NCBI GenBank assembly: GCA_021613535.1 | Contig: CP075496.1 | Location: 14,260,001 to 14,324,000, forward strand | Reading direction: 5' to 3' | From: Adineta vaga | Lineage: Eukaryota; Animalia; Rotifera | Length of the DNA stretch: 64,000 bases | Shown here: piece by piece, positions 1,281 through 27,806 of the stretch | Position numbering within the stretch: the first letter of the stretch is position 1 | Layout: each line of letters starts with the position of its first letter | Translations under genes and position numbers: made by a program | The notes under the pieces: generated by a model | Told to the model about the DNA's origin: nothing | The model's database searches: none | What the model saw: only the letters and a program-made list of their open reading frames with translations

Positions 1281-2163
1281 ATGTGTTCATATGAATCAAT
1301 TAAAACAAGTATTCGTCTTCTTCTTACATCAGCATCAAATGGTTTAAGCTTAGAACAATTAAATGCTGATTATCAATATTATAATCAATCAGAAAATATT
1401 CCTTTTGCAAATTTTGGTTATACATCATTAGTACGTTGAATTCTTATTTCATTATTGTCTCTTATCGTTGTTTATTTTAGTTAAGTTTTATACAAGATAT
1501 GTCTGATATTGCTCAAATTGATTTTAGTCCATCTCCTCCTATTATTTATGGAATTAAATCAAATCATCGAATGAAACGACAATTAATTGTTATTCAACCA
1601 AATAAACAACGTTCATCAAAAGATCTCAAACGACTTGTTCTTAATAATGTCTTGAAAAATACTCATTCAACTGAACATATTATTAAACAATTAACAAATT
1701 TAAATATGAATCAAAAATATTTATTCGAAACTTCATCAGAAAATTGTTCACTCAATCAAATTTTAATGATTCCAATAAATTCTTCAGATCAATGTCAAAT
1801 AATTCGTTATTCAAATGGAAAATTTTATATTACTTGTTTTGAATTCTCTCGAATATTAAATATTCATGAAGATTATATCAATAAAGAAACAGTAAGATGA
1901 ATATTAATATTTGTTTCTATACGTTTTTGTTGTCATTTAAGATGTTTAGTCGTTTACGTATTTATCAATCAAATAAGTTATTTCAAATGCTTCAAAAAGC
2001 AAATAATAATAATAATAATAATAATTCATGTCAACATATGAAAACTTGTCATCGACCATATTTTTTTCTTCTTTTAATTTCTTCGATTATACCTGTTTTA
2101 AAAATCAATGAAAATATTTATCCAAATTATGATCTTATTCTTGCTTTCGAGCAACTATTATAG
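1281..2163 (+). CDS. LOTUS/OST-HTH domain protein (3 exons)
   Basis: MCSYESIKTSIRLLLTSASNGLSLEQLNADYQYYNQSENIPFANFGYTSL|LSFIQDMSDI matches the LOTUS pattern (IRxLL..GL....L..DY.....IP...GY.SL..F...MPD); introns ~1431-1480 and ~1892-1941; poly-Asn from an (AAT)n tract near 2003-2026. Confidence 0.8.
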
Positions 2164-2786
2164 ACATGTAAATTTATTTATTTAATAATATTACTTTCTT
2201 TTGTTTTCTTTCGTTTTTGGTATGTAAAGAAATATATGAGTTTATTTAATTATGAATTGTGTTTGTTGTTTTTCTTTTTCTTATTTGATTAATATATGAA
2301 ATTACAGATTATTTGATGATGTTCCTATCTAAAAAACATATAATTGTATTCATGAGAATAGAGTGTGGATGTGCTAATTCACTAGTTAAAATTTGAACTG
2401 ATAGTTCTTTCAATAAATTTAACTTGATCAGTCCTTGATTTTTGTGCTGCATGATATTTCATTTGTTTCCTGTTTTTAAATATGTATAGATCCGATCTGA
2501 TAGATGTACATCTACGTTAATAATAATTGCCATTACCTACGATCTAAAACATAATAGTTTCTATGATAGTAAAGAAAAATTAAGCGTTTTAATGTTAATT
2601 CAGTAAAAACATAGAGATTCAATCAGAAGTATTGCATTTGTCAGACTTCATGTTGTCACAGTTGATCGTTCATTATACATACACTTCGAAAGTACTTATC
2701 GGTAAGAAATTTTGAGAATAATTTGATAAACTTAATACATTTTCCTATACATTCAAAATCATTTAGCTTCTATAAAGTTGTTTATC

Positions 2787-4183: not shown

Positions 4184-6353
4184 TTGTTTATTTATTTCAG
4201 ATTATCTGAATAATTAAGATTAACATGTATATGTACTTTGAAGAACCTCTTCCATTTGATCGACCTCGTCAAGAAAGACAATAGCCTTTTTTTTCGTCGT
4301 CAATCGTGATAATGCGTTTTTTTTCTTTTCATTTGTTCAAGATAATATATGCGAAAAGAAAACAATACGCCGTCCGTCTATTTATTTGAGCATCTCCGAT
4401 ACAATCGTTACAGGTTGAATAAATTACTGGATGAAATCTTTTTCTAAATATTGGGTAAATGAGTTTAAACGTTCAAAGTCAGATTGATGAACTATTCGGA
4501 AAGTGTAGAATGTGTCAATTGATGGTTTCACTAAAGCCGATCGACAAATCGTTCGGCCAAATTATAAACTGCTTCATATTCAGAAACACCATCTTTTATT
4601 TTAAAAAAACTTTTTTTAACTAAGCTCCTTTAATGGCAGCTTTACACCCTCTCAAATTCCCAAGAAATCCTGATTGTCCAACAGAGCCTCTCTCTCTGTA
4701 CACGATGCGCAATCACAGACTAAATACGAAAAACCAAAACATTAATTTAGTCCATAAAGATTGAGCAAAGGTTTACTTTGTGCAGGAAATAGTGGTTGAA
4801 TATTAGATGACCTTGACGAGTTTGTACTAGCAAAGTCTAAATGAGAAAAACGAAACATTCATTCATTTCTTTGCTGCTTTAGATATCCATAGATCTAATA
4901 GATCAGCATCTCTATTTGAAAATTCCTTTTTCTTTAAGATACTTTTTAGAGTACATCTCTGTTCATTGCAATATGAATCTCCAAAATATCTTCAACTTCC
5001 ATATCATTCTCATCATAAAACGATGGTGAATAGATTATCAAAAGTATGCAAATCATTTTACTTACATTCAAGTACAACAATATTGTACAATCATCTTCAT
5101 ATGTAAAACGTTTCAGTATTTCCGTAGAATTTTTATTTAATAGTGTTTGTAAAACACAATATTCTCTGTGATAACCGAAGGAAAACTAATCGCTTTAATA
5201 TTAATTCAATCAAAATATAGATTCTATCACTCGCATTGCATTCGTCAAATCTTAGATATCCTTATTATAAAATGCATTAATTGTTAGATAAAAAAAACTT
5301 GTAGAATTTATGTTTAGAGACTATTCACTGACATGATGCAAGAGAAAGAGGCATTTCGACCAGCTGTTTATCACGATCTCCCGACATATAAAAAAAACAC
5401 ATGGCGTTCAGAATGAAGTAAGGAAGAGACCTAAATAATAAAAGCCAGTCAAAAATAAAGAAGATCATAATGAACAATGATATTTTCTTTGAAGCTTGAG
5501 TTGATAATGATGAAAGCACGGAATAATGTTTAGAAGTATGTGTTCGTCTGTATTCATTTTTGACAAAAGGCAAATGGCTCTCTATAGAGAATGGCTTTGG
5601 TTTTATATTGATAAAGTATACAGGCTTCTATCACAAGAAAAAGAATGAAATCATAATAATCTGCTTGCAATGTCGAAATAAATTTCTTTAAACACATATC
5701 ATTTTCTAACACTAGACCTAGTCCAAGATATCTGATGCGAAACTCACTTGTCCGTAAAAAAACAATAGATACATATTTTGCTGTTATGCAGGATTCATTC
5801 CATTGATACAGACAAATTCAGTGTCGAAGAACAGCATCCTATACAGAGTGAATCGACTAATGAGGCTTTCTCTTTTTACCAAAAATCAATGACCATTTAA
5901 GTAACGAATCGATCGCCGTGCAATGTGCAACTTACAGTCTTCTATTCCCCAGAAGGAGGACGTAGGGGGTAAAGACCACGTTCTCTATTTGATCTCGAAT
6001 GTATTTCACTACGACAGGAGCCGTTTTAACTGCCAGTTTAAATGCAACACGATCACACCTTCATCTTTACATCTTTGGCAATTCATGTTTATTCTCATCC
6101 ATATTATTGTACATGATGCTAAAGCAACAAAATTATAATGATTCTCTCTACTATCTCAAACTATTCTAGGATTTCGGAATAACTCTCTAAAAGGGTTTTT
6201 GAATGGCTCGGAAACCCTAAAAGGGTGTCAGATAGTAATAAATATCTTTTTCCTAAGAGAGTATGGACATAAATAAGATTAGAAATAGTCATAAGATACA
6301 TTTCAACTAAAATAAAAACATCAGATATTCAATTCTTTCAAAACAAATTAAAA

Positions 6354-6539
6354 TTTGCAATTTAAATCAGTAAATGGTATTTGTGTCTGAAATAAAGTGT
6401 CGACGTTTCGTGTAACTATATACACATTTTCAAGACATTGATTTTTCAAGTTAGATTCGATCATCACGTGAAATTTTCATACACGAAACGTCGATACTCA
6501 ATTTCAAACAAAAACACCACTTATTAATTTAAATTGCAT
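6354..6539. repeat. ~60-bp inverted repeat pair (6354-6413 / 6480-6539), Penelope pLTR-like
   Basis: Left tgcaatttaaatcagtaaatggtatttgtgtctgaaataaagtgtcgacgtttcgtgta closely matches the reverse complement of tacacgaaacgtcgatactcaatttcaaacaaaaacaccacttattaatttaaattgca. Confidence 0.8.
6396..6439 (-). ncRNA. Putative minimal type-I hammerhead ribozyme (U3-A8 variant)
   Basis: Minus strand tgtc-TTGAAAA-t-GTGTA-tatagt-TACAC-GAAAC-GTC-gaca: stem I tgtc/gaca, stem II GTGTA/TACAC, palindromic ACGT stem III, GUC cleavage triplet. Confidence 0.55.
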
Positions 6540-6987
6540 ATCATTCGTCGTAAACTTGAAAGTGAATGTTTAAAACAATAAATTTTATCATTTAATTTAT
6601 ATGACGACTAAACTATCTGTGTTCAATCATGGGTTGTCATTGCTCAATTTCATTTTCATTATAGCGCCCTATCTAAAGAAGAACAAAAATATTGTAAAAC
6701 GCGAACGAGGGACCTCTATCGAATATTATCAAACGGATGCAGAACATTTTCAGAACGTGTTGGCCAATCATTCATCTCGGCCTGAAAGTGTCACTGTTCG
6801 TTCATTTTTTCATGTTCATTTGTCTGACTGATCTGTTCAGTCTATTTGTAAACGCATTGTTATCGACTATTACTGTTTGTCATTGGATTACTTGTTATCA
6901 TTCATTACGTCATCGATTATTACTTGCGTTACAATATTATCAATATATTTTGCATTCAATCAAGACTTCGACATTTGCTTTCTTTCT

Positions 6988-13689: not shown

Positions 13690-14776
13690 ATGTCGTTCGT
13701 TGTTAAAGCCAGCGGAATCTTACAACAACCAGCAACGGTTGCTCTTCTCTGGTACGCACAATTGTTTATTTTTTCGGAAAAATTTTCTATTGAAATTTTT
13801 CTTTATTGCAGGAATGTCTCGTCAGTCCGAAATATGGCTACTCTTAAAGACAGTAAGATTCAATTCATACTTATTAGCAAAGATCCTAAAATGTAATTTC
13901 ATATTTTTAGTCAGTCGTCGTTTAAAATCGGTTAAAAGCATTCAAAAAATCACCAAATCAATGAAGATGGTTTCTGCAGCTAAATATGCCAAAGCTGAAA
14001 GAGAATTACGTGCAGCTCGTGTCTATGGAATCGGTGCTAAAGGTATAACTAAATCTTTCCTTATTAAATATATCATTGAATTTGTTACGATAGGTTTTTA
14101 TGACAATTTGGATGTAGAAGCAGTTGAAGGACCACAAAAACATTTATTCATTGCTGCGACATCTGATCGTGGTCTTTGCGGTGCAGCTAATTCATCAATT
14201 GTGAAAAATATTCGTACACAATTAAATGATGGAAAACAAAATGTAGAAGGAACAAAAATTGTTGCTATTGGAGATAAATCACGTACTGGTCTCGCTCGAA
14301 CACATGCATCGAATTTACTTTTATCAGTTAATGAAATTGGTAAACGTTCAGTTGTTTTCAGCGATGCATCAGCAATTGCCCAACAATTAATTAATTCTGG
14401 TTTTGAATATGATTCAGCTGATATTGTTTATAATAAATTCAAATCAGCTATTGCTTATACAACATCTCGTCAAAAGATTTTATCCGGTGATGCTATAGCA
14501 CGCTCAAAATCAATTCAAGTTTATGATTCAACTGATGCTGATGTTCTTCGTTCATTTCAAGAATTTAATTTAGCTTCTGTTCTTTATTATGCAATGAAAG
14601 AAAATGCAACAGCCGAACAATCATCACGTATGACAGCTATGGATAATGCAACGAAAAATGCTGGAGAATTAATCAATAAATTAACAACTTATTATAATAG
14701 AACACGTCAATCTGTTATTACAACTGAACTTATTGAAATTATTTCCGGCGCTGCTGCTTTGGAACAAAAGAATTAA
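13690..14776 (+). CDS. ATP5F1C: Mitochondrial ATP synthase gamma subunit
   Basis: MATLKD|ISRRLKSVKSIQKITKSMKMVSAAK, SDRGLCG, EQSSRMTAMDNA, NRTRQSVITTELIEIISGA; three short introns in the 5' part. Confidence 0.97.
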
Positions 14777-22090: not shown

Positions 22091-24550
22091 TTGATACAAA
22101 AAAAAGAAATTTTATTTGAAAGATGTTCTTTTCTTTTTAATATTCTTTGTCTATTATTAAATTCCGCTTTTTTTCCTTCAATTAAATGTTATTTTATTCT
22201 CTATTCTTCAAGCTTTTATCATTTAAGCATGATTGCGTTTGTCAACCTAATTAAGAGTTTTCTTCTTCTACGGACGTCGTTTTTTCTTTAGGAAGACAAA
22301 CAAGTTTGTCAAGAAAATTACTTTTGAGAAAATAATTTCGACTTATTTTATCGAATAAAAGACACAAATTCTTTTAATACGATTAAAAATCTTGACGAGC
22401 ATATTTTCACACTTCTACGAATGAAATAGTGTGAACAATACCTTGAATTTAAATGAAAACTTTTTAACTAAACGTTTGGATATATTGTCATTCAGTTTTT
22501 TTGTTTCAAATAAATAATTCAGGAAAATATCCACCAATACTTTGTCGATAAAAAAAGGTATATTCCATTTTGTATGACTAACATGAGTTGCATTCATTCT
22601 TTTTTCTAAATACATTTTGTGTGACAAACTGCCTTTAAGCAGAACTTCATCACATTCAAGTACTTTAAGATAATTATTTCAAAGATTCAATAATGAATGA
22701 TTTAATTAACTACTTTTCAAAGTTACATCAACAAATAAAGTACTAAAACCATATAAGAACTAATCTTTTAGAAGCAATTGAATGCATTGTGTAGTGTTAA
22801 CGCCAGTCGTTGTTACTTCAAATTCTTTCCTGTTGAATGTGTCTCTTTTGATCATCATGTCTTCATCATGATATTCTTCTATTATGTCGTGCTATTGTTT
22901 TCGTCTTTGTCTCTTTCTACCCTTTCTTATAAGGCGCAGGCAAGTCAAACTTTAAGTGAAATTTTTTTTTGGGCTTTTTTTCACATTATTTGATAGGGCG
23001 AGAGCTGCTAATCACCAAAATCTACTTTTTAGCCTTAGCAAATACTTCCTTCCAGTCGAAAAACACGAAATACTCGAGAAGTAGTTTTTCGAGGAAAAAC
23101 ACATTTTTTTCAAAATATGTCTTCTATTTGGGTTCGTGCTTTTTGCGACTTTCTGAAAATATTTTTTTCAGATCCAGTATAAAAAACTGAGGTCAGAAGA
23201 GTTGTTATATCGGCTTAAGACCCCAACATTTTTTCAGAGTGGTACTCCGAATCTCTCTGAATGCAATACGCAGAAGTCGTTTTTGTAAACGTATCAAGTT
23301 TTTCTACGTAAGCGATGAAGCCAAGTATTTTATCTCATTCAACTCAACATACCATCAGCTACAAAATTCCGCATTCTTTTTTTTCTTTTCTTTCCTTTGC
23401 TGAAAAAAATCGTTTTTACTGGTGTCATAGAAAAAGGGGAAGGTCATTTTTCAATAAAAAGCTTATTTTTTAGTCGAATCAAGTGAAACTTGTTTTACAC
23501 AAGTAAAAACTGATGGTAAATCGAATACGTACATTTTCGAGATCTCTAGAGGAGCTTCAGGGGTCTCTAGAAAACTCGCCTAAAAAACCATAGGATAACG
23601 ATGTGTCTAATAAGACATGTTTTTGTTTAAGATACTATAGTTGAGGGTGCGGGTACTGAACGAAGCGGGCATCACCCACATCGACCAACACTCACACCCA
23701 CACTCTAGTTAGTTATTAGATTTGAATAGATACTAGGAATCGAGATCGTTCACATGTTTTATCCCTTACGGCCGGATGTTGCCGAATGACAACAAGCCCA
23801 TTCCTTGTTGTTATCGTATAATGCATAATTCATCGTATTATTACAATAGATTAAGGCTTTAACGAAGAAAAATAATCTGAAGTTAGTCCTGCAGTCAGAC
23901 ATTTAGGCTAGTAGCAAATGCGTCATAACGCCTTGAGAGCTGTTTCAGACATGGTCGAGAGAGTTGACCCTTGACTTCAACAAAAGCCATTTTTTACCAT
24001 CGCAGTGCATAGCTTTGTAGTACAATGCATAAAGGTAATTGTCAGCTTAATTGCAGTGCTATATCTCGTGGCTTTCTGAGAAATTTGTGACTAGTGCTGA
24101 CCAAATGTTGCCAAAAGGTAACGTTCGACCGGAAAGGGTTACGATAACTTTTCTTCATTTCAGCATTGTTAATTCGCTTCATTTAAATTCTCACCCTCAC
24201 TCCTCACACTTACTAGCAGTGTTATTTTGGCTCACTGCTCTTTACGTGAATAGTAACTGATACAAACCAATTTAGAAGACGCATCGACTACAACTGAATA
24301 CTCTTCACCTAGCTATTTTCGTGAATTTGATCGTATGAGAGAGAACATGATAAAAACTTTATCTCTTGTGCTATTCAGTGCAAGAGGAAGCGGCGTCAGT
24401 TCTCGATTTATTCACATTATATGGTATGACATTTATACGATTCAAAGTTCGACTATAGGAAGGAGGAAGAGTGAAACCTTATATTCCTCTTAGTACAAAA
24501 CAATCATTGCGGGCCAGTACGAGAAATCATACCAGTGGGAAGTGGTGTGC

Positions 24551-24560
24551 CTATAAAAGA
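24551..24560 (+). promoter_or_regulatory. TATA box of the defensin-like gene
   Basis: CCTATAAAAG about 160 nt upstream of ATG 24713, in a locally GC-richer context. Confidence 0.5.
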
Positions 24561-24712
24561 GGCTCGAACATCCATTTGATTTCGCAGTAATACATCGATC
24601 TTCAAGTCAAACAATAATTGTTGATTCTCAACGTAGCAATAAACGGTAGGATTTTCGATAGTTTCCTCTTCTTTCCATAGTTGCCAATATTCTTGATTTC
24701 CAAGGATAAGTT

Positions 24713-25026
24713 ATGAAGCTCACTCTCATTCTGGTTACTCTTGTTGTGCTGGTAGTCTGTATGTGGTCGACCGGTAAGTCACTGAATATTGTGCTAGAAA
24801 CACTTTTTGAAATAATTTCATCTGAATAAATTCTCATATATCATTCGCAGAAGCGGCGCCATCGCTCGAAGACGGTAATGATGAAGTAGCCCATGCGCGA
24901 AGCAAGCGCTGGACATGCAATAACTGGACAGGCGATTTTTTGTGCGCTGGATGGCCGGGTTCATGGCGTTGTCGGTGCGGTGCGGCCTGCTATGGTGGAA
25001 CTTGTACGTGCAGACGCTGTGTCTAA
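24713..25026 (+). CDS. Prepro defensin-like 8-cysteine peptide (2 exons, 78 aa)
   Basis: MKLTLILVTLVVLVVCMWST|E (phase-1 GTAAGT..CAG intron 24774-24850) AAPSLEDGNDEVAHARSKR-WTCNNWTGDFLCAGWPGSWRCRCGAACYGGTCTCRRCV*; AATAAA near 25125. Confidence 0.88.
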
Positions 25027-26127
25027 GTGGAGCGAACAAGGCCTTGGCAACTATTCATTCTCCCCATTCACTCTAATTTCCTTTTATTCATGTAACTCGT
25101 AATCTTCCTGCCTGTTAAATCCACTAATAAACATGAAGGCATCAATATACAGGATACAAGTAGAATCGGTGGACTGATTTGTTTATGAAAGAGTACACTG
25201 GAAAAAAAAACAGTAGCATGTAAAACCCAAAAAGGGTATTTGAAAGTGCAACGGATAATAAACCGTAACAAACCGTATTGTAACATCTCCCAAACCCTTT
25301 CGAATATCTTACAAAACCATTATTTTAACCGTATATTATGACAAAAAACCCTGCAGAAGGGTTTATGATATCGTTTATTAAATCTATTTTTTCAATAAAA
25401 AAATCATTCTTCCAGGGTTTCAGATAGGGTATTAAAGTATCATCAACCCTAAAAGGGTATATTATTCGTTGCACTTTCAAAAACTCTTTAAGCGTTTTTA
25501 AACTGTTTGGAATACCCTAAAATACGCTGTGTATTCCTGAAGTAACCATATTTGATAATCACTATTATATGTTCATATACGAATACAATCGTTTTATGAG
25601 TCATTTTTGACGTATGTATATCGTAGCGGGGTATTCAGAAGCATTCATAAAAGAACTTTATACCTGTAATGAGTATTCCAACACCCAGTCAATGGTGATC
25701 CATACCTAATAAGGGTACTTGAAGTTTGACTTGCCTGCACCTTACATATAGAGTTGTTTTTTCTCTTTTTCGCTAGTATTTCTTGTTCTCTTCCCAATAA
25801 ACACAGTCACTTTTATCACTTATCGTTAGATACGATTGTCTTGATTTTTCGTAGTGAGATTTTTCGATATTCTACGATACAAATCTATTGGAGGTTGGAG
25901 ATTCTACCTTTACATTTTCCATAATGAGAACCTTACACTGTATACCATTCATCTTTTTGTCATTATTTCAATTAATATTGATATGTTTCAAATCTTCAGA
26001 AGACAATTTTCTATACGAATTTCACAATTGTTTTTGTTTTAAATACAAACGAGAAAGAAGAAAATACATTTGATTTCTTACAAAGCAAATAAAATAAAGA
26101 CTAAAGTTTCTTTCGGAAAATAAACTG

Positions 26128-27806
26128 TTATTTTAATTTTGTCGTTGTTTTCTTCATTAATTTGTTCATATAATAATAATTTCTTTGTAAATATACATAT
26201 TCATTAAAGATTTGTTCACATAAACAATCATCAATTAAAGTATTTAATTGAATTTCTTTTTCAAATTCTTCGAAATCTTTTTTATATTCATTATAAGCGT
26301 TTGCTTCAAGTTTTGATTTGATTAAATTAATTTCATTGGTCAATGGATAATATCGATAGTGAAATTTTAATTCATATAATCGATAAATATAACGAAAATC
26401 AAGACATCGACGAATTGCATTATTTATTCGATTTATTAATTCACACTTCAAACATCAAATCATATAGAAATCCATCACATACATATTGTTAAATTACCTG
26501 ATCTGAATCGCCATCAATATCTGATTTAGTATTATCAATCAACAGTGAAGTTTCTAAAATGAACAAATGTGAATAATCTTGAAATAGAAGTAATTACCTT
26601 GTTGAACAATGGATGAAGATGATTCTTAAATGAAAAACGAATAATCAACGATGAAAGTAAAAGTTTTATTTTACCATCGATTATTGGTGGTAAAATACTT
26701 TCATCACTTGTCGATAATGATGATGATTCTGTTGTACAGAAAGGAAATAAAACAAATGATTCAATTTTATTTTTACTTAATTGATTTTCTGGATTGTCAG
26801 TTTTAATTTCAAGTGATTCATCTAAACGATAATCATCGAAATTGAAATTAGGAGGACTTTGAATAAATGTATCTGGACTTGAACAAAAATCATGATCAAC
26901 ATTTGAATGAGGAACAACTTTAATATTTAACGGAGTTTGTGGAGTCGAAGGTAAATATGGTTTGAAATGTGATGGAAGAAAGTTTTGTGAAACTAACAAA
27001 AAAGAAAATAAGGATTTAGTTTTCAAAATAATTAATCTTCATGTACTCGTTGATTGTTGAAAGAAACGATGATTATTACGATATGATGGATGTATCTAAA
27101 ATATACAATATGAAAATTCATTTTATTAATAGAAAAGATGTTACTATACCATTTGATTAGTTCGGATATGATTATTGGTATCTATTGATTAGAATAACAG
27201 ATTAGAATTAACTTAAGAGAATAAACTTACAATGATCAAATGAATATTGTTCATATTGATGCACTAAAAGAAAAACAAAATGAAGAATTTTCTTAATAAA
27301 AATGACGAAATACAATTGAAATGATTGATTTGTTGAATTTGATTGCAATGCCAATTTTGATTGTATGACTAGAAGCATAAATTCTTTCATCTATCTATAA
27401 ATATCTCTTAAATAATATACGTGATTTTCATATTGATATTTATCTCGTTGTTCTAAAACCATTTTTTGAATATGTGCTGTTGTTTCATTATAAACAGGAT
27501 GAACACGATATGACATAGAATTTGGTTTTGTTTCAATTTGAACAACATCAGGCATTGAACGTAATAAAGATAAAAATGAATGAAAACCAAGTTCAACATC
27601 TAAATTTAAAATAAGATTTCTTTGTTTCTGAAAAATGAGAAGAATAACTTACATGGAATTTCTTTTCCACAATTTAATTCTTTATAATCATGATATAATG
27701 ATGAACCTGTCAAACCTCCATATTTTGTTTTTGGTGAACTAATTAATAATGAACGTATTTCTTGTTTAATATTTTCATAAACTTTCGTTTTCTTATCATC
27801 TCGCAT
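26128..27806 (-). CDS. LOTUS/OST-HTH domain protein (multi-exon)
   Basis: MRDDKKTKVYENIKQEIRSLLISSPKTKYGGLTGSSLYHDYKELNCGKEIP|YVELGFHSFLSLLRSMPDVV..TAHIQKMVLEQR (extended-LOTUS-like helix), low-complexity middle, helical C-terminal exon. Confidence 0.85.

Follow-up and report, generated by a model that had tools for sequence, protein, structure and literature searches.

A terminal-inverted-repeat element of Adineta vaga, a bdelloid rotifer, that encloses a complete, transcribed gene for a secreted eight-cysteine peptide

The stretch of DNA analysed here, referred to as the window, comprises 64,000 nucleotides of the Adineta vaga assembly GCA_021613535.1 (contig CP075496.1, positions 14,260,001 to 14,324,000; C4:14260001-14324000 in the 100.8 Mb, six-contig genome that was searched). 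At 22932-25742 it contains an insertion of 2,811 bp, bounded by terminal inverted repeats (TIRs) and flanked by TA on both sides, which encloses a complete two-exon gene for a small secreted peptide with eight cysteine (Cys) residues. The site is on chromosome 4, approximately 0.9 Mb from the chromosome end. The A. vaga assembly consists of six chromosomes, with 1-3 homoeologous to 4-6, and the genome has few transposable elements, mostly low-copy TIR elements, with chromosome ends that are rich in transposable elements and foreign genes (PMC8494291). The features of the locus, in window coordinates and with the strand where one applies, are the following.

22823-22929: left part of a short dispersed host repeat, with copies 76-93% identical, which runs straight into the right part in at least five of them
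22930-22931: TA, left copy of the target-site duplication (TSD); a single TA in paralogous copies
22932-22957, plus strand: left 26-bp TIR, from a repeat search, containing GCAAGTCAAAC in common only with the right TIR
22932-23576, plus strand: left arm, approximately 650 bp of transposon-family DNA with 35% guanine plus cytosine (GC), 66-83% identical to at least ten genome copies starting with TAAGGTGC
23577-24551, plus strand: unique non-coding cargo upstream of the gene, approximately 38.5% GC, with no second genome copy
24552-24559, plus strand: predicted TATA box (TATAAAAG), read from the sequence
24713-24773, plus strand: coding part of exon 1 from the ATG at 24713, namely the signal peptide MKLTLILVTLVVLVVCMWST plus one base, with a phase-1 boundary; an RNA contig covers 24704-24772/3
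24774-24850, plus strand: intron of 77 nt, GT..AG, 29% GC, skipped exactly by the RNA contig of run X13; the intron of the paralog has the same place and phase
24851-25026, plus strand: coding part of exon 2, namely a propeptide ending in KR, a 38-residue mature peptide with eight Cys conserved in the family, and the stop codon
25126-25131, plus strand: AATAAA polyadenylation signal, read from the sequence; the RNA contig extends to 25101
25194-25499: nested repeat resembling a miniature inverted-repeat transposable element (MITE), with inverted arms at 25222-25264 and 25456-25498; copies on chromosome 1 are approximately 69% identical
25500-25716: unique right sub-terminal DNA, 217 bp, without family homology and matching only itself in the genome
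25717-25742, minus strand: right 26-bp TIR, from the repeat search
25743-25744: TA, right TSD copy; a single TA in paralogous copies
25745-25869: right part of the dispersed host repeat, known from paralogous copies

The ends of the element are sharply defined. The repeat search identified 22930-22957 and 25717-25744 as inverted arms of 28 nt, TA included, that are 93% complementary; without the TA the TIRs measure 26 bp and are complementary at 24 positions, in agreement with the original prediction from the sequence alone of TA-flanked 26-bp TIRs with two mismatches. A search of the window allowing three mismatches returned those two sites only, and no comparable pair arose in 100 shuffles of the sequence. 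The likeness between the two ends ceases directly after the terminal 28 nt, and the TIR variant that they have in common is found nowhere else in the genome.

The DNA outside the TIRs supplied the empty single-TA site that had been looked for, present in paralogous repeats and not as an allele. In at least five copies of the dispersed repeat (at C1:0.759 Mb, C1:1.0166 Mb, C1:2.749 Mb, C5:2.55 Mb and C3:20.16 Mb) the left flank passes directly into the right one with no element between them. Four of these five read ..TTA-TA-CATATAGAG.. with a single TA, the other having AA at the site, and the window reads ..TTA-TA-[element]-TA-CATATAGAG.. at the same place. Thus, the DNA of 22932-25742 is an addition that came in at a TA, which was duplicated in the process. 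The target repeat itself is approximately 250-330 bp long with copies on chromosomes 1, 3, 4, 5 and 6, and five copies are spaced approximately 20-25 kb apart at C3:20.12-20.25 Mb.

The gene enclosed by the element is intact, transcribed and spliced. A 322-nt contig of run X13 covers 24704-24772/3 and then 24850/1-25101, skipping the 77 nt with GT..AG ends; the same run contains contigs of the neighbouring minus-strand gene in spliced form and does not cover the remainder of the element, which identifies X13 as RNA and the cargo gene as a transcription unit of its own. The ‘complete expression unit’ first proposed (TATA box, two exons and polyadenylation signal) is therefore present, and its splice is seen in RNA. 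The precursor has a hydrophobic N-terminus, an invariant KR, eight invariant Cys and a small C-terminal mature peptide, the product of exon 2 being a 19-residue acidic propeptide that ends in KR and is followed by WTCNNWTGDFLCAGWPGSWRCRCGAACYGGTCTCRRCV. The genome contains one paralog, on chromosome 1 at 7.765 Mb, with 70% protein identity, a phase-1 intron after the signal peptide as in the cargo gene and a TATA box of its own; no TIR of the transposon family was found within 80 kb of it. Between the two genes synonymous sites are saturated (pS 0.73) and dN is approximately 0.2, which indicates that the gene copy is old and constrained.

A 14-nt sequence, CATTYGATTTCGCA, occurs at window 24573-24586 and at L022:1310-1323, 15-25 nt downstream of the TATA box of each paralog. 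It was rejected as not significant, 16 of 300 shuffles scoring equally. Neither A. vaga peptide gene (24713-25026 in the window and L022:1336-1641) was among the proteins returned by protein searches, and both may be missing from the public annotation.

The composition of the insertion differs from that of its surroundings. The GC content of the element is 37.6%, compared with 28.1% and 24.8% in flanks of equal length; the 2.8-kb GC maximum of the window begins at 22901 and the jump coincides with the TIR boundaries. Exon 2 reaches 57% GC. The GC content at third codon positions (GC3) of the cargo gene, as estimated from a sample of 78 codons, falls from 0.60 over exon 1 through 0.53 over the propeptide to 0.50 over the mature peptide, as opposed to 0.09-0.27 in nine nearby open reading frames (ORFs), so that the gene is indeed more GC-rich than host genes, as had been stated. 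In the chromosome 1 paralog the propeptide and mature parts have a GC3 of 0.21-0.23, and the 22-codon exon 1 has one of 0.50. An argument for foreign composition is tempered by the other elements of the transposon family, which have 33-38% GC, and by the peptide homologs in AT-rich metagenomic contigs, with GC3 of approximately 0.45 in the mature part.

The two ends of the element are asymmetric, with the family arm of approximately 650 bp on the left and 26 bp on the right, with approximately 2.1 kb of unrelated DNA between them. Neither 23580-25200 nor the right 245 bp has any match in the genome other than itself. That the element lacks a transposase, as originally reported, was confirmed, and no remnant of one was found either (longest ORF, 73 aa; best tblastn match with the family transposase, E=1.2). 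The loci that match the left arm all start with TAAGGTGC..GCAA, and the base preceding the TA varies among 10 other copies of the family. The terminal 20-mer pattern has 42 occurrences in the genome, compared with 6 for the reversed control, and inverted pairs of the terminal motif bound whole elements with TIRs of 448-690 nt that are 98-99.7% alike. These include L072 (3,625 bp, 690-nt TIRs 98.5% alike) and L073 (3,562 bp, 592-nt TIRs 99.7% alike), both of which have the first approximately 20 nt of the terminus in common with the element, and L074 (C2:63554-72516), which spans 8,963 bp with 448-nt TIRs 98% complementary, approximately 8 kb between them and no DDE_3 transposase. A 341-aa ORF of L072 matches DDE_3 (PF13358, E = 1.2e-8, 35.3 bits against a cut-off of 28.6), and its ..ELNPIEGLW.. 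aligns with DLNPIENLW of Sleeping Beauty (the LNPIE motif). L073 holds a copy of the transposase 48-56% identical to that of L072, and approximately seven such transposase loci are present in the genome. Furthermore, a TIR identical to the L004 type, the subfamily closest to the left arm, lies 0.8 kb from the transposase match C2:193767-194807, marking a candidate autonomous element at C2:192970. Relatives of the transposase, 545-592 aa in length, were found in Adineta ricciae, A. steineri, Rotaria spp. and Didymodactylos, several of the bdelloid ones bearing the name ‘Tc1-like transposase DDE domain-containing protein’. The combination of a TA duplication with a family of termini linked to Tc1-like DDE_3 transposases supports the Tc1/mariner assignment made at the outset; to judge from these sequence relations, the element belongs, as a non-autonomous member, to a bdelloid group within the IS630-Tc1-mariner superfamily.

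Other members of the family show features of their own. By the motifs GHDEST, VVVDNAR and NPIEGLW, the transposase at L072:835-2669 (minus strand) has its second D separated from the E by approximately 116 residues, and the related enzymes, of approximately 550-600 aa, thus differ from the DD34E/D type, which this apparent spacer far exceeds. The 270-aa N-terminal part of the family transposase is without a Pfam match, and the two transposase ORFs of L072 do not share a frame, pointing to an intron or a frameshift. The interior ORFs of L074, a second large carrier devoid of transposase, encode FLYWCH (PF04500) and hAT dimerisation (PF05699) domains. L075 (C6:8331567-8338410) has a solo family end of 68 nt (95-162), which pairs, at 90%, with the far end of a complete 1.5-kb long-TIR element (5233-6745). 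In the 5 kb between the ends lies an ORF for an OTT_1508-like deaminase (1874-2347, minus strand; PF14441, E = 3.5e-10); L075 may be a composite transposon.

A finding of the peptide gene at the same position without TIRs had been named beforehand as evidence against a mobile element. Contigs bridge both junctions in all three DNA runs (X1, X9 and X10, from two studies), which leaves the proposal standing, and no presence/absence polymorphism of the element was detected among these three data sets. Depth over the element in X1 is 70.9, compared with approximately 41 for heterozygous bubbles, and the copies of the element show differences at 0.2-0.5% of sites, both to the reference and among themselves, with one F>Y and two synonymous variants in exon 2. 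The two-copy depth together with this divergence indicates an insertion that is fixed and not very recent. Joints of 22901, 22906 and 22918 to 25743/25744 in X1 and X10 were considered as empty alleles and rejected, their inserted letters matching the repeats at C1:0.759 Mb and C1:1.0166 Mb. One X1 contig joins 22838 to 26735, skipping 3,896 nt, with a depth of 73.7 and 22 nt on its shorter side; the bin 26719-26915 has approximately three times the usual depth, and this joint is probably a repeat adjacency from elsewhere in the genome.

A metagenome scan returned no match to the exact TIR variant and, for the peptide, one uninformative 1.3-kb contig and no other copy of the cargo. A tblastx comparison of the window with 80 kb around the chromosome 1 paralog yielded the peptide exon only, and no close paralogs of three neighbouring genes were found; the homoeologous block was not located by these searches.

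The word-based and exhaustive searches gathered 19 relatives of the peptide, among them sequences from Rotaria sordida and R. magnacalcarata, from bdelloid-like metagenomic contigs and from the nematodes Panagrolaimus, Meloidogyne, Diploscapter, Ditylenchus and Aphelenchus. All eight Cys, N4, T7-G8-D9 and the dibasic site are conserved. Two of the Diploscapter sequences, distant relatives, carry the PROSITE-based UniProt name ‘Invertebrate defensins family profile domain-containing protein’. The cargo peptide falls, in a tree of weak resolution, outside a clade (86/88 support) of the paralog and the Rotaria sequences. The gene family is also found outside transposons, and the metagenomic contigs carrying P0001 and P0002 show no family TIRs. 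The Panagrolaimus davidi member P0006 (UniRef A0A914QWZ4) has a bdelloid-type mature peptide (NNWTGDFLCAGWPG) and is nearer to the rotifer sequences than the other nematode members are, a likeness that may reflect either rotifer contamination of that assembly or transfer.

The peptide had been called defensin-like from the outset. This designation agrees with the secreted eight-Cys precursor and with weak matches to the cysteine-stabilized alpha/beta (CS-alpha/beta) fold, although there is no match of the peptide at E <= 10 in Pfam or among the sequences of the Protein Data Bank (PDB), and the cysteine spacing (C-x8-C-x8-C-x-C-x3-C-x4-C-x-C-x2-C) departs from the canonical CxxxC...CxC. Rfam and tandem-repeat searches gave no result, and a protein atlas returned weak toxin-like neighbours (0.76-0.77). 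An AlphaFold2 (AF2) model of the 38-residue mature peptide, built from 23 sequences, has a predicted local distance difference test (pLDDT) score of 79.9, with two short helices (10-13 and 16-20) and a hairpin of two strands (25-28 and 31-34); it was used instead of a model of the 57-residue exon 2 product (4 sequences; pLDDT 46), which was discarded. All 24 Foldseek matches of the former are CS-alpha/beta peptides, the best being scorpion K+ channel toxins and insect defensins. Like other peptides compared under the CS-alpha/beta heading, namely the invertebrate defensins mussel MGD-1 and nematode ASABF/ABF and the scorpion K+ channel toxins, the cargo peptide is made with a signal peptide and a propeptide as a short C-terminal mature peptide, with eight Cys, a C-terminal CxCxxC and a predicted helix and two-stranded hairpin. 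It differs from them in not fitting the CxxxC...CxC framework and in lacking a sequence match, and it is known here from its sequence and a model. Thus, ‘defensin-like’ is a reasonable label at the level of the predicted fold, membership of the family being putative; four disulfides in the 38-residue peptide are probable, and an antimicrobial or toxin-like role appears likely.

The explanation moderately favoured here is that of a non-autonomous Tc1/mariner-type element carrying the complete peptide gene, pasted into a TA by the family transposase acting in trans. A non-autonomous family member would have acquired foreign DNA between its ends, either through a template switch in the course of gap repair or through joint use of the outer ends of a composite, and this DNA would already have been between the TIRs when the element inserted. 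The family transposase would then have cleaved at both TIRs and inserted the unit at the TA within the dispersed repeat on chromosome 4, with duplication of the TA. The gene would since have been expressed as a secreted precursor, presumably cleaved after KR to the 38-residue peptide with its predicted helix and beta-hairpin fold. The retention of exactly the right terminal 26 bp fits selection for mobility and accords with this reading, with which the change of composition at the TIRs, the transposase-less L074 and the composite-looking L075 are also consistent. Several findings weigh on the other side. The element and its cargo are single-copy in the genome, so that there is no second insertion to prove that the cargo moved, and no parental gene with nucleotide-level similarity was found in the genome, the cargo (23580-25200) being single-copy; the element is at the same site with two-copy depth in all three DNA data sets. 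Of the autonomous element that had been sought, relatives with DDE_3 transposases and related termini (L072 and L073) are present in the genome, but none has the TIR variant of the element, and even the nearest family arms are only 66-83% identical to it. The family's usual long sub-terminal repeat is absent from the right arm, a feature that might hamper transposition, and the fold matches of the peptide are weak (E >= 2, TM 0.5-0.6, Z 2.1-2.6). Accumulation of the cargo in further copies, as envisaged in the original prediction, was not borne out, the search for other copies with the same cargo having returned none. Of the mobile gene-carrying cassette that it proposed, one TIR-bounded insertion with a complete transcribed gene stands, while transport of the gene with the element, transfer between genomes and an immune function would be further possibilities.

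Three other explanations were weighed. TA flanks are obligatory for every insertion of the superfamily, so that TA alone does not tie the two ends together, which would leave room for a resident gene flanked by two related MITEs that inserted independently of one another, or by an inverted repeat that arose by chance. However, the flanks are contiguous with one TA in the paralogous repeats, which calls for one insertion rather than two and already refutes such a scheme; by taking into account also the unique TIR variant common to both ends, a right end that is a bare 26-bp TIR and not a MITE, and the outcome of the shuffles, it becomes barely credible, and the two-MITE alternative raised at the beginning can be set aside. 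More serious, though still on the unlikely side, is acquisition in place: an ordinary family member would have occupied this TA, and its interior and right arm would later have been replaced by gene-bearing DNA, through abortive gap repair after excision with template switching or through double-strand-break repair, the gene itself never having been transposed. Double-strand-break repair is frequent in the desiccation-tolerant bdelloids. The paralogous empty sites prove that there is extra DNA between the TAs, not that it arrived in one step; the right arm has been cut down to 26 bp, and a secondary insertion, that of the nested MITE-like repeat, did happen inside the element. With a fixed single copy, no parental gene and no polymorphism, this alternative is kept. 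Against it, the donor DNA is found nowhere else in the genome, the replacement would have needed to leave precisely the minimal right TIR intact, the cargo has a composition unlike that of the local sequence, and no TSD or TIR of a second element bounds it.

A special case of the favoured explanation, insertion of a cargo-bearing unit by the family transposase, would be horizontal arrival, with the unit built in a genome of higher GC content, perhaps that of another bdelloid. The contrast in GC3 between the cargo gene (0.50-0.60) and both the propeptide and mature parts of the paralog (0.21-0.23) and the neighbouring genes (0.09-0.27) argues in this direction, as do the non-coding cargo (38.5% GC in flanks of 25-28%), the lack of a parental copy and of a close transposable-element relative in the genome, the position of the peptide outside the paralog and Rotaria clade in the weak tree and the many foreign genes reported near A. 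vaga chromosome ends (PMC8494291). However, the position and phase of the intron are common to the resident paralog, other elements of the family are also at 33-38% GC, the amino acid composition forces GC-rich codons, metagenomic homologs in AT-rich contigs attain GC3 of approximately 0.45, the sample is only 78 codons, and no donor was found in the protein and metagenome searches. Taken together, these considerations make an origin in another genome rather doubtful.

That cut-and-paste transposons capture genes is well documented for plants, where mostly gene fragments are involved; in animals, to our knowledge, there are few clear examples of a complete, expressed gene under purifying selection inside a Tc1/mariner-type element. 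The Pack-MULEs and Pack-CACTA elements (PMC5861414) are likewise bounded by TIRs and devoid of transposase, contain transcribed host-type gene sequence and are GC-richer than their surroundings. They are, however, of the Mutator and CACTA types, occur in plants in many copies and carry mostly gene fragments with recognisable parental genes, whereas the present element is of the Tc1/mariner type, resides in an animal and carries one whole intron-containing gene with its own promoter, as a single copy with no parental copy. With Tc1/mariner elements and Stowaway-like MITEs it has in common the TA duplication, short terminal repeats, mobilisation in trans and relatives with DDE_3/LNPIE; MITEs, in contrast, are short and without cargo, and their ends are not asymmetric as here, with an arm of 650 bp facing one of 26 bp. 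Host genes are likewise moved between two transposon ends in bacterial composite transposons, Ac/Ds macrotransposons, the Mavericks of nematodes and the Starships of fungi (PMC13004909), which differ in that no second full element is present here, that Mavericks and Starships are far larger and that the transposition chemistry is another; within the A. vaga genome, L075 resembles the composite state.

Bdelloid rotifers are asexual and known for the acquisition of foreign genes, few of the vehicles of which have been recognised. A TIR element whose ends are exact, whose insertion site is proven and whose passenger gene is live provides a concrete and testable vehicle. The analysis also brings to light a small family of secreted eight-Cys peptides common to bdelloids and nematodes. 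If the peptide is antimicrobial, the locus would tie mobile DNA to the turnover of immune effectors and, if horizontal arrival were true, it would represent the transfer of a transposon with a functional host-type gene as passenger, a ready-made secreted peptide for an asexual animal, and the same transposon group (L074 and L075) may effect such transfers repeatedly.

Elsewhere in the window, the ORF at 13700-14776 encodes an ATP synthase gamma subunit identical at 270 of 271 positions to Adineta vaga I4U23_021684, with the matches ranking after it coming from other bdelloids. The gene is nearly intronless, its one 51-nt intron being in frame and open, so that it reads through as 17 extra residues in the plain ORF.

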